64,000 nucleotides of DNA, from contig OZ176053.1 in the NCBI GenBank assembly GCA_964247055.1, positions 496,001-560,000 of the forward strand, in the 5' to 3' direction. A program made the translations under genes and the position numbers. This stretch comes from Paragordius varius (taxonomy: Eukaryota > Animalia > Nematomorpha). Positions 48,401-52,943 of the stretch are shown piece by piece (the first letter of the stretch is position 1; each line of letters begins with the position of its first letter). The notes below the pieces were generated by a model, which was not told where the DNA came from, ran no database searches, and was given only the letters and a program-made list of their open reading frames with translations.

Positions 48401-51400
48401 ATATATAGTTTTAAAATATTTGTCTAAAGATTTTGAGACAGAGAATCAAAGGTATTGCAAATCTTAATCCGTGTTAACTTTTAAGTATTTGGAAAAATGA
48501 TAATAATGATGCGGAAAATAGAAACAATTGGAAACAATAATAAAAACTTTCTTAATTCAACTATTTTCATTTTCGAATATAAACGACTTTGATGAAAATT
48601 CTAAAATTTTTTTATTTTATTTCTAACTTTTAAATTATCTTAAAATGACGTGTATTGTTTTGTAGGTATGCATGGTGGTGGCGGTTTATACTTTGGCGGA
48701 TTATCTCATGGGGCAGCGGGTTGTTATAGCCCTTTGACAGGGGGTGGGTTGAGCGGTGCCCTAACTCCCTCGCTGGGGGGCGGAGGGATGACGCCTTGGG
48801 GTCACTCAGCCGGTTTTACGAGTGCCACCACACCATATGGTACAATTGGATACGAATCAGCTGCTGGATCAGCTGGTTACTCCCCTTCCATAGTTGGTGG
48901 AGGCGGAAGTGGGAGTGGAATGACCCCGGGAGGCGCCATTTTTTCCCCGTCAGCTGGGAGCGAAATGAGTGGATTTAGTCCAGGGTATTATATATTTACA
49001 TAAATCAAGATTTTAAAAAATTTAAGAAAAGGTGATTTTAAATTTCGAAATTTTTGTGAAATCATATATGTTTGAATATCAGTAAAAATGAATTTTTATT
49101 AAGATTGCTACTGTTGATGTTAAACATTGTTAAATATATATAGCTTTTTAAAAACGTTTTTTTTTGACATATGTAGCAGAGTAATACGTTTTTATGACCA
49201 TAATTATCGCATAAACATTTTTTCCTGAATACAAAAGTACTGACGTGTATTATGAATTTTTAGGCAATTACAAATTACACAACCTATATTATGTATATAT
49301 ATTTGAACTAGATACAGTCCACTGTGGTCACCTCAACCCCAAAGCCCTGGGGGTGGAGGCATGTCCCCGGGTCCAGCCAGCCCCTATTCAGGCATTCCAG
49401 GATCTCCAGGCGGTCCGTTGGGGGGCGGAGGGGGATTTTATAGCCCCTCGTCTCCGGCCTTTGCTCCTGGGGGTGGGAGCAGTTCCTCTGGTGGAGGCAG
49501 TAGCGGTAAAACCATTTGATTTTTACTCAAATCAAAATTTCAGACTACTAAACTTTAATCAAAATTGTATAACTTCTGGCTTTTATACTATGATGGAGTT
49601 TATGCTATTTTATATATAATACAATAAAAAAGATATTTTATGGTAGAATCCAACCTTAAAAATACTCTTTTTTGTAAGGAAATTTGTGTATGACTTTACT
49701 TTTTAGGGAGTTTATATGTCTTTCCATTTACACCTCAATTTAAAAGTTTATTTTGTCTTTAAACTAAAACTTTTACAGCAATGTTGAAATAATAATTGCT
49801 TAAATTGAGATTTTAGCTTATTAATCACTTATAAATTTTTGAAAATGTTACATCCTTTAACAAAACCATTTAAATGTGGCATGACTTAACTTTTAGCTAT
49901 TTTTTTCTTAATAACATTATAAAACCATTATTTTTTTAACTTGCTTTCTCATTTAGTATTTGTACTTTACATTTAACTTTTATATATACGTTTGACCAAG
50001 ATTACTTGTAGTAATTAAATACTCACTGTAATAATTCATTCATAGTTATAGCTCAACTATATAATATCCTAATATCGAATTTTTTAATGTTTTCTCCATT
50101 TAACAAAACCATTTAAACGTTACTTATTTTTGAAAAGTTACATAATTAGAGTCAGTCAAAATTTAGATCAAGGAAATCAGAGTATTCATTTGTTTGCAAT
50201 AACTAATAACTTTTGACTCGTTACTATTATAACCCTTTTCATAATGTTCCATATATATTTATATATATGTTTAGGGAGTTCATATTCCCCACCCTCACCA
50301 GCTGCGTATAGTCCCAGTTCCCCGCGTTATTCTCCCACAGCTGGTTCTTCTTTGGGGGGCGGAGGGGCCTCGGCCTCATCCTACAGCCCGAGTAGTCCAG
50401 CAGCAGCAGCTGGAGGAGGTGCTACACCCTACAGCCCATATTCACCCAGGTTTTTGGATTATGCTTTTAAAGCGTTTTAGGGGGTTTAATTGAATATATT
50501 TCTATTAACTCCTTGGTTATGTTTTGTAATAACAGTTGTTAAAATCCGTAAGATAACAACGATAAAGGAAATTAAATAGAATTAAATGAAATTATAAACG
50601 AATTTGTGAAATCCTTGGTCAATAGTAATCGCAGATTAGTTTCGTGCTTGTATTCGACAAAGATTACTTGCGCGGTAATCGAAAATTCGCTGTTTTACAA
50701 TTCAATTTAATTATTGCTGAATTGAAACAGCTATTTTAATAATTTTATAACGGTTTTTGGTTTTTAACTGATTTATGTTTGCTATACTAGGGGAGAATTT
50801 TAGGGTAAAGTGTGTGTGTTATATTACTAGGATTAGGTTTTAAATATCAATATATAGTAGGTTTTTTAATCTTGTCCATAAAGGCCTGAAAAAATCTTGA
50901 TAACATTAAGATTCTCATTATGACATGCATTTGAGACATTAAATTCCTTTTTTTAAAAAAATGTTTTTAATTGTGTAAAAATATCCGAAATATTAAACCA
51001 TAATAAAGCCGTTTTTACATGTGGAAGCAATGAAAACATGTTGACACTATTAATTTACAATATAAAAAGCATATGTTTACATTGATAATTTTGCATAATT
51101 TTTGCCAGATGGCATATAAATTAAAGGGCAATATAATTGGCGCCTATAATTAATTTTTTCACTTTTCAAAAGGTCGCTCCTCTTTTCTAATATGCTAAAG
51201 CGGCAAGGCAATATTTAATCAAAATATTAGCAATGTGTATTATTTACTCATACAGTAATATGGTGTATACTAACTTACATTATGCACATTTATCAAGCCT
51301 ATTTTGTTCATAAATTTAAATAATTAATGATGTAGTAAGGTCGCGGAAAAAATGTTTAATTTCAAGATTGTTTTTTACCCATACTTTACTGTGGTGCCAG

Positions 51401-52943
51401 TTGGTCAATTATTATAATGTAAAGTGACCAGCGTAAACAGTATTTTTCCAACAAAAATTTTATAAACACACATACACACACACATTTTTTCATCGTTAGA
51501 TACTCTCCCCATTCCCCACTCCTGGCAGCTGGTGGTCAAAAAGGCGGAAGCATTTATCACAGTCCTGAGAGCCCAAGGTACAGTCCATCCTCTCCGGCCT
51601 ACAGTCCTAGCAGTCCGAGTTATACACCCACGAGTCCGAGCTATTCAGCACTAACGCCCCTTTCTGGCCGTGTGGGGCGGGACCGAACCCCAGGAGGAGG
51701 AGGGGGTGGGGCTTCTGCATCCACCATGTATTCACCCTCCTCACCCAATTATAGTCCTTCATCTCCGGCTTATCATCCGCACTCAGCTGATCGATCTGCG
51801 GCTCCTATGAGTTATTCACCTTCCTCGCCCAAATACAGCCCTGGCTCACCCGCTGGTTCTGGCGGATCAGCTGGTCTGAGTCCAGCTAGCCCGATGAGTG
51901 GCGGTGGCTCATCAGCTGGTATTGGGTACAGCCCTAGTAGTCCTTACATGCCCGCCACTCCAGGGAGCGGTTTAGCGGGCCCATCATCACCCAAGTATTC
52001 TCCGAGTAGTCCGGTTTATGGAGGAGGTGGTATGTGAACTTTATTTGCTTTAAAATTTAAAAAATGTAATTTAACATGTTTAAAAATTCACCAACCTTCC
52101 TCATCATGTTATGTGTTAAATATATATATATATATTAATTTTTTAGGTTCTTCCGCAAGTCCAAGGTATTCTCCAGGAGCCTCGTTTTACAGTCCCTCCA
52201 CGCCGGGCCATGCATCAAGTGGGGCGGGAGGAGGTGGCGGTTATTCTTACTCCCCCAGTAGTCCAAATTACAGTCCATCTCTCAACAGCAAGTACAGTCC
52301 AAGTTCTCCCAACTATTCGCCTTCAAGCCCGCCGTATTCACCTGTTGGCGGCACAACGGCCCGAAAAACAGCCGGTGCGCGGTCAGCTGAGACACCGAAG
52401 TACAGTCCAGTCAGTCCTCGATACAGTCCCAGCAGTAGTCCACGATATACACCCAGCAGTCCCAATTATAGCCCAAGCAGTCCAGCTGTTGCCGCCATCA
52501 TTGGATCGGCTGGGGGCGCATATACTCCCAGTAGTCCTCGATACACACCAACTCACACAATAGGAATGGAAGGGGGTGAAGATCAGTATAGTCCTTCGAG
52601 CCCAAGCACATTTCTTCATCAAGCATCATCAGCCGTTGGGGGCGGCGGCGGATATACTCCAGGAACACCTGGGGGACCCTTCACACCCGCCAGTCCAACA
52701 TATGATGACGGGGACGATATGGCCGTCACTTCACCAGCTGTTGTGATGGAATATTCGCCATCTTCGCCAGCTGCTTGTGTCCCTCACACCCCAGGTGGCG
52801 GAATGAGTGCTTACGATAATTTGCCCGCCACACCTTATACCCCAGGAGGAGGGGGAGGGAACATAAATGATGATGGGGAGGAATACAGCCCTGTCGATGA
52901 TGAGGACTTGGCTTATACGCCATCTTCCCCTGCACAAGAATGA
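30475..52943 (+). CDS. POLR2A: DNA-directed RNA polymerase II largest subunit, 26 exons, 2210 aa
   Basis: Exons 30475-30552, 30579-31298, 31564-31725, 31985-32205, 32593-32850, 33614-33824, 34569-34778, 35137-35305, 35918-36087, 36516-36644, 37901-38167, 38966-39135, 39892-40132, 40819-40995, 42615-42917, 43430-43578, 44209-44378, 45605-45792, 46665-46847, 47223-47426, 47854-48091, 48666-48984, 49312-49505, 50275-50449, 51500-52029, 52147-52943; all phases are consistent. Zn motif [22 protein letters not shown], catalytic [11 protein letters not shown], bridge helix [15 protein letters not shown], trigger loop [10 protein letters not shown], and a YSP-repeat CTD. Confidence 0.99.
33250..33555. 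mobile_element. Family B CCATTT-ended MITE in RPB1 intron 5
   Basis: TA|CCATGTACAGTTCAAATTCACCC ... GGGTGAATTTGAACTGTAAATGG|TA. Confidence 0.85.
35583..35837. mobile_element. hAT-like MITE in RPB1 intron 8
   Basis: Termini CAGAGGGATGTC / GACACCCCTG; flanks CTCTAGAA and CTCTAAAA form an 8-bp TSD with one mismatch; internal sequence shared with a degenerate copy near 22261-22540. Confidence 0.7.
37010..37900 (+). repeat. Tandem ~200-220 bp units in RPB1 intron 10, each made of a family B MITE right half plus a copy of the exon 11 acceptor
   Basis: AAG|GTCATTG recurs with the AG ending at 37276, 37499, 37700 and 37900 (the real acceptor). Confidence 0.85.
38186..38700 (+). repeat. Three ~110 bp direct repeats in RPB1 intron 11
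   Basis: TTGGAAATTTGTTTTGTTTAATATGTGTGGGCTACC... at about 38186, 38296 and 38584. Confidence 0.85.
39197..39481. mobile_element. Family C MITE in RPB1 intron 12
   Basis: GAAATATACGGAAAAAACGTAAAAATATAAAGAC ... CCGTATAATTTCAATTTTT. Confidence 0.65.
40197..40430. mobile_element. CCATTT-ended MITE (family D) with a different 21-bp subterminal unit, in RPB1 intron 13
   Basis: TA|CCATTTGCACTTCAAGAGTGTCCTTGAAC ... GTTCAAGGACACTCTTGACGTGCAAATGG|TA; unit CTTGAACACTTCAAGTTGGTC. Confidence 0.85.
41040..41450 (+). repeat. Three ~130-145 bp tandem repeats in RPB1 intron 14
   Basis: TATATTCATCGTAATGTAAAATTAATGAGAAAAT repeated at about 41045, 41187 and 41327. Confidence 0.85.
41686..41984. mobile_element. 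Family C MITE in RPB1 intron 14, followed by two tandem copies of its right TIR
   Basis: CAGTAAAAATTGAAATTATACGGACAAAAC ... CAGTTTTTACTG|TA; right-end repeats continue to about 42140. Confidence 0.8.
44400..45060 (+). repeat. About four ~180 bp tandem repeats in RPB1 intron 17
   Basis: ACACCCAAAGGGGGGTGAAATAATAATTTTGG and GAACAATTTAAATTAACTTT recur at roughly 180-bp spacing. Confidence 0.85.
46332..46519. mobile_element. TA-target MITE (family E) in RPB1 intron 18
   Basis: TAGTATGCATTTTAATGGTTGCTTATT ... AATAAGCAACCATTAAAATGCATATACTG|TA; nearly the whole element is an imperfect palindrome. Confidence 0.75.

Follow-up and report, generated by a model that had tools for sequence, protein, structure and literature searches.

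The RPB1 gene of the nematomorph Paragordius varius encodes a C-terminal domain (CTD) in which short heptad islands are set among long glycine-rich spacers. This tail is set apart by 15-19% glycine, by heptad runs that never exceed three and by a length about double the usual for a normal number of tyrosines. The reading that we favor, with a probability of about 0.68, is that this is a working RPB1 in which a contiguous array has evolved into about 19 islands separated by Gly/Ser/Ala spacers, and that the tail still acts as a normal CTD.

The window analyzed is a stretch of 64,000 nucleotides (contig OZ176053.1, positions 496,001 to 560,000), and the features within it are collected in Table 1. 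An arthropod POLR2A sequence (P0010) aligns to the window by tblastn in 20 collinear in-frame pieces, running from 30627 to 47973 and corresponding to residues 45-1442, and the core exons match the Pfam models PF04997 (206.7 bits) and PF04998 (106 bits). The N-terminal exon query (238 aa) returned 309 matches, none from close relatives; the best-matching proteins carry the name RPB1, and the top one is a spider RPB1 with 69% identity. The core preceding the tail is complete, collinear and conserved.

Table 1. RPB1 features and CAGCTG words in the window.
Feature	Position	Strand	Description
RPB1 core, catalytic body of RNA polymerase II	30475..48091	+	About 20 or more exons; last core/linker exon 47854-48091
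CTD exon 1 of 5	48666-48984	+	Gly-rich pre-CTD linker, aa 1-107; no strict heptads; AG and GT borders, and frame
CTD exon 2 of 5	49312-49505	+	Conserved linker motif, as in other animals; first heptad YSPSSPA; Gly/Ser spacers
CTD exon 3 of 5	50275-50449	+	Islands including YSPYSPR; spacers GGGG/AAAGGG
CTD exon 4 of 5	51500-52029	+	Longest heptad run; sole Thr4 heptad; PF05001 match
CTD exon 5 of 5	52147-52943	+	More islands; acidic tail; TGA stop 52941-52943
14 CAGCTG words in the CTD exons	48858..52773	+	All in codon phase xCA-GCT-Gxx

The exon borders were read from DNA alone, and the counts were made on a conceptual join of the five CTD exons, which leaves room for an artefact of the gene model or of the copy studied: the mRNA could use other exons, or a second RPB1 locus could carry a canonical YSPTSPS array. 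However, all five exons have GT..AG borders and consistent phases, with a phase-1 G carried over from 48091, and they continue an RPB1 frame that is maintained only when all five are included. The product of 48666-52943 is 671 aa, in agreement with the roughly 670 aa over five exons given in a preliminary description of this DNA. That description also raised the case against itself that other exons might give contiguous heptads, but canonical or heptad-like coding is absent from every frame of the introns and of the 3 kb downstream, and AT-rich micro-intron candidates were not found within the CTD exons. Haplotype indels begin only past 49505, immediately beyond the end of an exon, and the depth of the alternative alleles is about half of the total depth, as for two alleles at one locus. 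Of four sequencing runs aligned here, three are DNA, and the fourth, possibly RNA, has essentially no coverage and yields no splice junctions. With a complete and conserved core attached, an artefact is highly improbable, and the RPB1 gene with its tail exons is real.

The linker that joins core and repeats in animals (MTPGG..FSPS...) is present in the window, as comparison with the RPB1 of another animal shows. Residues 1 to ~149 of the 671 are this conserved pre-CTD linker, common to other animals, so the heptad-bearing part is ~522 aa. The Pfam CTD repeat model (PF05001) scores 29.6 bits on exon 4 against a cut-off of 20.3, and the other four CTD exons are below threshold.

Recounting in the 671-aa product gave the same figures as before, with 16 YSPSSP, three YTPSSP, one YTPTSPS and no YSPTSPS; YSPTSP is also absent. 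Chance alone, given the composition of the tail, would yield only ~0.015 YSPSSP. The 28 strict Y-x-P-x-x-P heptads are spread over 19 islands, and all of them keep Y1, P3, S/T5 and P6. Position 4 is Ser in 20 heptads, Gly in two, and Pro, Tyr, His, Thr, Ala and Val in one each, and position 7 is A9, R4, N4, S3, G3, and L, K, Y, V and P once each. The runs of one to four heptads described earlier reach four in one island if a truncated unit is counted, but strict islands hold one to three. Eleven of the 19 islands consist of one heptad only; such islands are smaller than even the yeast functional unit.

The spacers are 8-47 aa long (mean 18) and rich in Gly, Ser and Ala. The Gly-rich linkers noted previously are evident in 11 runs of at least four glycines, and the acidic end of the protein has 15 Asp or Glu and no Lys or Arg in the last 110 aa. 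Overall, the tail contains 15-19% Gly, 23% Ser and 16% Pro (6 Gln, 8 Asn and 107 Pro among the 671 residues). At ~520 aa it is about twice the usual length, with 44-51 tyrosines compared to heptad counts of 37-58 in other animals. Its C-terminal Y-S-P-x-S-P-x repeats are those of the RPB1 family, but it departs from a canonical tandem array in its longest strict run (three), its lack of consensus YSPTSPS and its single Thr4 in 28 heptads.

The preliminary description proposed that Thr4 signalling had been replaced or lost. The preponderance of Ser4 (20/28) over Thr4 (1/28) agrees with the first alternative, but loss is unsupported, since Ser4 retains a hydroxyl; judged from the sequence, "replaced" appears to suit the data better. 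Ecdysozoan CTDs commonly have Ser or Ala at position 4 (PMC4362643), about one-third of C. elegans heptads carry Ser4 in the sequence, and in human cells T4S is reported to be milder than T4A (PMC11754735). The change from Thr4 to Ser4 is a conservative one; besides being frequent in Ecdysozoa, it prevails in several other eukaryotic RPB1 tails.

The CTDs of C. elegans AMA-1 and of Ecdysozoa share with Paragordius a Gly-rich pre-CTD linker and a variable position 7, and AMA-1 also has occasional small Gly/Ala interruptions (YESGGGYSPSSPK and SPAAGQSP). However, the C. elegans heptads are mostly contiguous, have Thr4 in the majority and include 10 exact YSPTSPS among 37, whereas the Paragordius tail has almost no Thr4, short runs, long spacers and ~1.5-2x greater length. 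The CTD of Drosophila melanogaster is likewise highly divergent, with only two consensus heptads in 37, interruptions by non-heptad sequence and variation at positions 4 and 7, but many YSPTSP cores remain, glycine is scarce and the length is normal (~310 aa). Flies are reported to develop with a tail made of consensus heptads only (bioRxiv 10.1101/448506). Exact YSPTSPS is also found in only 1/48 heptads in Amphimedon and 0/25 in Breviata, and its absence is not rare.

Four further RPB1 tails (P0008, P0013, P0035 and P0037) have Ser4 in 17-18 of 19-23 heptads, or in 9/10, and no YSPTSPS; P0013 also has short VAG/AAG inserts. To judge from their core sequences, these proteins do not look animal and are mostly protist-like, and they differ from Paragordius in having contiguous runs of 5-10 heptads, 3.6-6.1% Gly and tails of 112-232 aa. 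Across 19 comparison CTDs, the glycine content is 0.3-7.8% and most heptad runs are 4-35 long. A query with CTD exon 5 (264 aa) returned three weak matches, to generic CTDs, and one with the last core exon (79 aa) returned none, in a search whose length range lay outside that of full-length RPB1. A wider search starting from the last CTD exon brought 37 matches and no orthologs. The top match to this exon (P0004) was rejected as a composition artefact from a bacterial repeat adhesin, and P0002 (contig L001), considered as a possible relative, was uninformative: the contig is eukaryotic and AT-rich, and has mixed Ser4/Thr4 heptads and no CAGCTG. A literature search retrieved nothing joining Nematomorpha and CTD heptads, nor anything on Gly-rich spaced CTDs.

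Variation between alleles in the tail exons is dominated by synonymous changes, with at least 27 synonymous and at least three non-synonymous differences among those listed. The rough dN/dS of ~0.05, which is approximate and drawn from these listed differences, lies inside the published range for repeat-bearing CTDs (PMC3646058). Among the SNPs listed, 8 of 10 in exon 1, 10 of 11 in exon 2 and 8 of 8 in exon 4 are synonymous, and many spacer and linker codons are included. Purifying selection demonstrably acts on islands and spacers alike.

The CTD exons have a GC content of 0.55-0.64 compared to 0.19-0.27 in the introns (0.57 in exon 1 and 0.21 in the intron that follows). Because GC3 is low (0.41, near the 0.36 of the core) and GC2 is 0.75, the exon GC arises from the choice of amino acids, and GC-biased conversion was rejected as its cause on the basis of the same GC3 values. 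The spacers are rich in Gly, Ala, Ser and Pro, with Asn, Lys, Ile and Phe almost absent, against a background of ~20-25% GC in the unconstrained DNA of this genome; the composition is maintained against mutation pressure. Recent repeat expansion was rejected as the origin of the islands and Gly runs: the codons are mixed, and a single 24-nt, 2.2-copy tandem repeat was detected. With mixed codons and almost no tandem DNA repeats, the Gly runs are not products of recent slippage.

One DNA-level feature does leave its mark on the protein. The hexamer CAGCTG occurs 14 times in the CTD, compared to 2.6 +/- 1.45 (maximum 8) in 2000 synonymous-codon shuffles, and occupies 14 of 25 possible sites there and none of seven in the core. 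These words encode SAG, AAG, TAG, PAA and PAV tripeptides in spacers and island ends, and the "SAG" linker pattern is partly due to this genome-wide word. A DNA-level word thus shapes the sequence of an essential protein domain.

This excess of CAGCTG, far above what the protein requires, would also be expected if constraint on the tail were relaxed, that is, if it were decaying in a parasite with simplified regulation, with few heptads that matter and with spacers as near-neutral filler, made by DNA-level processes such as CAGCTG spread and GC-rich insertions. Strict heptads fill only 35-37% of the tail, the Pfam repeat model passes on one exon only, and the CTD of another animal parasite, Schistosoma mansoni, has been published as having lost its repeat structure (PMC3646058). 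By that description, however, the S. mansoni tail has no repeats and lowered Ser and Pro, whereas Paragordius preserves 28 clean heptads with Ser and Pro at 23% and 16%. Relaxed constraint also does not sit well with the predominance of synonymous differences in spacer and linker codons, with spacers that stay Gly/Ala/Ser/Pro-rich amid AT-rich DNA, or with the retained number and even spacing of tyrosines, and we consider it unlikely.

The resemblance to a sticker-spacer sequence suggested in the preliminary description holds in part. Gaps between aromatic residues have a CV of 0.61 compared to 0.92 +/- 0.12 in 5000 shuffles, of which 0.02% were as even, and the longest stretch without aromatics is 31 aa, although this evenness owes much to the seven-residue period. 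Like FUS/TAF15-type domains, the tail is disordered, Gly/Ser-rich and has evenly spaced tyrosines as aromatic stickers. Unlike those Gln/Asn-rich and Pro-poor domains, it has [G/S]Y[G/S] at only 7 of 46 tyrosines, almost no Gln or Asn, 16% Pro and SP motifs that are kinase sites; it is outside the FUS/TAF15 class. Moreover, the canonical CTD has itself been described as a sticker-and-spacer sequence (PMC11502803), and so it is the type of spacer that has changed here, while the principle is not new.

How much heptad continuity a CTD requires differs between systems. In yeasts, di-heptads with spacers suffice (PMC6548728), and five-Ala spacers between functional units are tolerated (PMC2894937). 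Mammalian cells need a penta-heptad as their smallest functional unit, with spacer distance also critical, and in human cells di-heptad-plus-spacer designs are lethal (PMC6548728). The Paragordius tail contains 12 di-heptad units of the yeast type (Y[ST]P.[ST]P.Y[ST]P), whose function is predicted from the motif, and no penta-heptad, there being no strict run of four or five heptads. It resembles the engineered di-heptad CTDs in placing units of one or two heptads between non-heptad spacers, but those are artificial and have short Ala spacers, whereas this tail is natural, belongs to an animal and has Gly-rich spacers of up to 47 aa.

It is conceivable, if doubtful, that the jobs of the tail have been split, with a Gly-rich, Tyr-spaced scaffold providing reach and condensate formation, islands of one or two heptads carrying the phospho-code, Thr4 signalling abandoned and the readers co-adapted. 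As for a tail re-engineered outright, with condensate formation and reach moved to a FUS-like Gly scaffold, the code in di-heptads, Thr4 signalling gone and readers co-evolved, it would account for a glycine content beyond that of all 19 comparison CTDs, the even Tyr spacing, the missing penta-heptad and the scarcity of Thr4. It is very unlikely, given the high proline, the few [G/S]Y[G/S] motifs and the probable ability of Ser4 to replace Thr4.

According to the favored reading of a working, island-bearing CTD, an ancestral contiguous array would have given way to ~19 short Y-S-P-S-S-P-x islands, of one to three heptads each, with flexible spacers between them. The preserved Tyr1, Ser2-Pro3 and Ser5-Pro6 may permit phosphorylation of the CDK7/9/12 type and the binding of readers within one or two heptads, and Ser4 may substitute for Thr4 as a phosphorylatable hydroxyl. 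The spacers would extend the tail with its tyrosines still within the range of heptad counts in other animals, and multivalency would be preserved despite the broken array. The Gly spacers and the extreme bias toward Ser4 look like tendencies of Ecdysozoa and nematodes taken further, and the favored CAGCTG word of the genome dictates part of the spacer sequence at the DNA level. As the mammalian minimal unit is missing here, normal function of the tail has to be assumed and would depend on readers that have adapted with it.

The Pol II tail coordinates capping, splicing, termination and entry into condensates. Work in human cells indicates that animals need five-heptad blocks set at controlled distances, and attaches importance to Thr4, yet the one RPB1 seen in Paragordius has blocks of three heptads at most, hardly any Thr4 and Gly-rich linkers of 8-47 residues, and is nevertheless under strong purifying selection. 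If the jobs of the tail are indeed split, the mammalian penta-heptad requirement would be shown in nature not to be a general animal rule. Current views are not overturned, since Drosophila, Schistosoma and many protists are already known to have degenerate tails. The Pol II tail differs from one organism to another, and the Paragordius tail is an unusually extreme form of it that selection nevertheless maintains. It provides a natural construct for asking how much heptad continuity an animal needs, whether Ser4 can stand in for Thr4, and what effect spacer chemistry has.

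The RPB1 core that precedes the tail is intact, since a local tblastn search with the arthropod POLR2A sequence (P0010) recovered 20 collinear, stop-free pieces (30627-47973) that together span residues 45-1442 of the query. The core exons match Pfam Rpb1 domains 1 and 5, and the N-terminal exon shares 69% identity with spider RPB1 and 62% with nematode RPB1s. The C-terminal domain (CTD) is predicted to occupy five exons, with a phase-1 G carried from 48091 into the first of them and with phases that agree across all five. Outside exons, GC content in the AT-rich window is only about 25%, and the tail exons, at 55-64% GC, stand out from the four introns between them, at 19-27%. 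Joined in a local script, these exons encode 671 amino acids. Residues 1 to ~149 form the pre-CTD linker that is common to other animals, and a 36-residue stretch is a near-verbatim match to the linker of another animal RPB1; the heptad-bearing part therefore comprises about 522 amino acids.

Predicted exons of the Paragordius varius RPB1 tail
Feature	Position	Strand	Support
Tail exon 1	48666-48984	+	AG/GT borders in DNA, consistent phase
Tail exon 2	49312-49505	+	AG/GT borders in DNA, consistent phase
Tail exon 3	50275-50449	+	AG/GT borders in DNA, consistent phase
Tail exon 4	51500-52029	+	AG/GT borders in DNA, consistent phase
Tail exon 5	52147-52943	+	AG border in DNA; stop 52941-52943

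A canonical array hidden elsewhere at the RPB1 locus is excluded, since no YSP, SPxSP or Y.P..P motif is found in any frame on either strand of the tail introns and the 3 kb downstream, and the tail exons contain no AT-rich GT..AG segments of 18-30 nt that could serve as micro-introns. In CTD intron 3 (49972-50333 and 50513-50695), the contig depth of the DNA runs rises abruptly from ~100 to 8,700-160,000, and loose ends and small skips are numerous at 50513-50651, a pattern that resembles a MITE-like short repeat of very high copy number.

The heptad counts of the preliminary description are reproduced exactly in the joined exons: the tail contains 16 YSPSSP, three YTPSSP and a single YTPTSPS, with neither YSPTSP nor YSPTSPS present. 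From the composition of the tail, only about 0.015 copies of YSPSSP would be expected by chance. There are 28 heptads matching Y.P..P, a search pattern that makes Tyr1, Pro3 and Pro6 invariant by definition. Position 2 is Ser in 22, Thr in five and Met in one, and position 5 is Ser in 25 and Thr in three. At position 4, Ser predominates (20), followed by Gly (two) and one each of Thr, Ala, Pro, Tyr, His and Val. Position 7 holds nine Ala, four Arg, four Asn, three Ser, three Gly and others. These heptads form 19 islands of one to three repeats, 11 of them holding a single heptad, and the islands are separated by spacers of 8-47 residues (mean 18), mainly Gly, Ser, Ala and Pro, with 11 Gly runs at least four residues long. 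The aromatic residues are more evenly spaced than chance would provide (CV of the gaps 0.61 versus 0.92 +/- 0.12, with 0.02% of shuffles equally even). The tail end is indeed acidic, with 15 acidic and no basic residues in the final 110. The sole tandem DNA repeat in the tail exons (52408-52461, 2.2 copies of a 24-nt unit) is small and arose by recent duplication of a heptad-plus-one unit.

It is not unusual for exact consensus heptads to be absent, and Ser4 has precedents. In published counts, exact consensus heptads account for 2 of 37 in Drosophila, 1 of 48 in Amphimedon and 0 of 25 in Breviata (PMC4362643, Additional file 1). In the Caenorhabditis elegans tail (supplement of PMC4362643), about one third of the heptads have Ser4, and there is a Gly-rich linker along with small interruptions such as YESGGGYSPSSPK. 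When 1.84 billion representative sequences were searched for tails resembling the last tail exon, several mostly protist-like RPB1 proteins among the closest matches proved to be Ser4-dominant: P0008 (18 of 19 heptads), P0013 (17 of 23), P0035 (9 of 10) and P0037 (9 of 10). The last of these (NCBI MHA1682035.1) is a 1705-residue eukaryote-type RPB1 with YSPSSPQ repeats in its Ser4 tail, filed on a 73-kb contig as the DNA-directed RNA polymerase subunit A' of a [Promethearchaeota archaeon] MAG; most likely, the contig is eukaryotic and was binned into an archaeal MAG. Among animals, a CTD that has lost its repeat structure is reported from Schistosoma mansoni (PMC3646058).

High Gly content, short runs and a low heptad fraction together set this tail apart from 19 comparison tails. 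Gly content is 15% without the linker and 19% with it, versus 0.3-7.8% in the comparison tails, the longest contiguous run is three heptads versus mostly 4-35, and only 37% of the Paragordius tail lies within heptads, although it is about 1.5-2 times as long as usual. Its tyrosines (44 in the heptad-bearing part, 51 overall) are nevertheless as numerous as the heptads of other animals (37-58). Library searches with exon-sized queries, which are unable to retrieve a full-length RPB1, reached no hairworm relative, and a search of the accessible literature found no paper linking Nematomorpha with CTD heptads. A contig considered as a possible relative (L001, Logan SRR18067452, 2220 nt) is eukaryotic and AT-rich, with 35% GC, several short RPB1 tail exons, short introns and heptads of mixed Ser4, Thr4 and Ala4 type.

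The DNA runs show two haplotypes at roughly equal depth. The listed differences in the tail exons include 27 synonymous and three non-synonymous changes among at least 30, and the synonymous ones are spread over linker, spacer and heptad codons alike; indels between the haplotypes start only just past the exon end at 49505. Among the differences listed, and with about one third of sites taken as synonymous, dN/dS is approximately 0.05, which falls among the values published for CTDs that carry repeats (PMC3646058). At 48674-49609 and 51767-52063, the haplotypes differ by ~3-6% in exons, nearly always synonymously, and the adjoining intron differs by SNPs and several small indels; heterozygosity is very high in the individual or individuals sequenced. 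A sequencing run filed under another species label (X5) carries the 51216-53200 locus at ~99% identity and is not independent; it comes from a sibling species or from this species under a different name.

The spacers are rich in Gly, Ala, Ser and Pro, and Asn, Lys, Ile and Phe are nearly absent from them, against a genomic background of ~20-25% GC in free DNA. Since GC3 of the tail (0.41) is near that of the core (0.36) and GC2 reaches 0.75, the high GC content stems from the amino acids chosen, and the similarity in GC3 rules out local mutation bias as its source. The Gly runs use all four codons in mixed order, which, along with just one small repeat in a tandem-repeat search of the tail, rules out fresh slippage products. 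The composition against an AT-rich background, the core-like GC3 and the mixed Gly codons argue that the spacers are kept by selection at the protein level. The tail is an extreme form, maintained by selection, of a domain whose variability is already known.

A DNA word also leaves its mark on the tail. CAGCTG occurs 14 times in the 2016-nt tail coding sequence (48858-52773), always in the phase xCA GCT Gxx, where it encodes Ser, Ala, Thr or Pro, then Ala, then Gly, Ala, Val, Asp or Glu. In 2000 synonymous-codon shuffles that preserved the protein, 2.6 +/- 1.45 copies were obtained, with a maximum of eight. Of the 25 sites at which the tail could carry the word, 14 do so, versus none of seven in the core exons, and the other 18.6 kb of the gene contains just one copy. 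The SAG linkers of the preliminary description are largely translated CAGCTG, which shapes about 6% of the residues of this essential domain, including some Ala7 at island ends; the word seems to occur where it is compatible with the protein. Further sites in the window are found at 24288-27329 (six) and 34665 (one).

Everything that the main CTD kinases and readers use is preserved within the islands, namely Tyr1, Ser2-Pro3 and Ser5-Pro6. The decapeptide Y[ST]P.[ST]P.Y[ST]P, the smallest unit that functions in yeasts, occurs 12 times, and yeasts tolerate spacers between such units (PMC6548728; PMC2894937). Thr4 signalling had been proposed to be replaced or lost. Because Ser4 retains the hydroxyl group, and a T4S tail is reported to be less harmful to the viability of human cells than a T4A tail (PMC11754735), we infer replacement at position 4 and not loss of the signal. 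The spacers plausibly act as flexible linkers that preserve valence and reach. The proposed sticker-spacer design fits the Gly-rich spacers and the even aromatics; the principle itself is not new, as the canonical tail has already been described as tyrosine stickers with conformationally restricted SPxx spacers (PMC11502803). The change here is one of spacer chemistry, toward flexible Gly, with the principle unaltered. Human cells require penta-heptads at controlled distances (PMC6548728), and the Paragordius tail has none. If this is the sole RPB1, its readers must cope without penta-heptads and with 11 single-heptad islands, and it is this clash with the human requirement that makes the case deserving of experiment.
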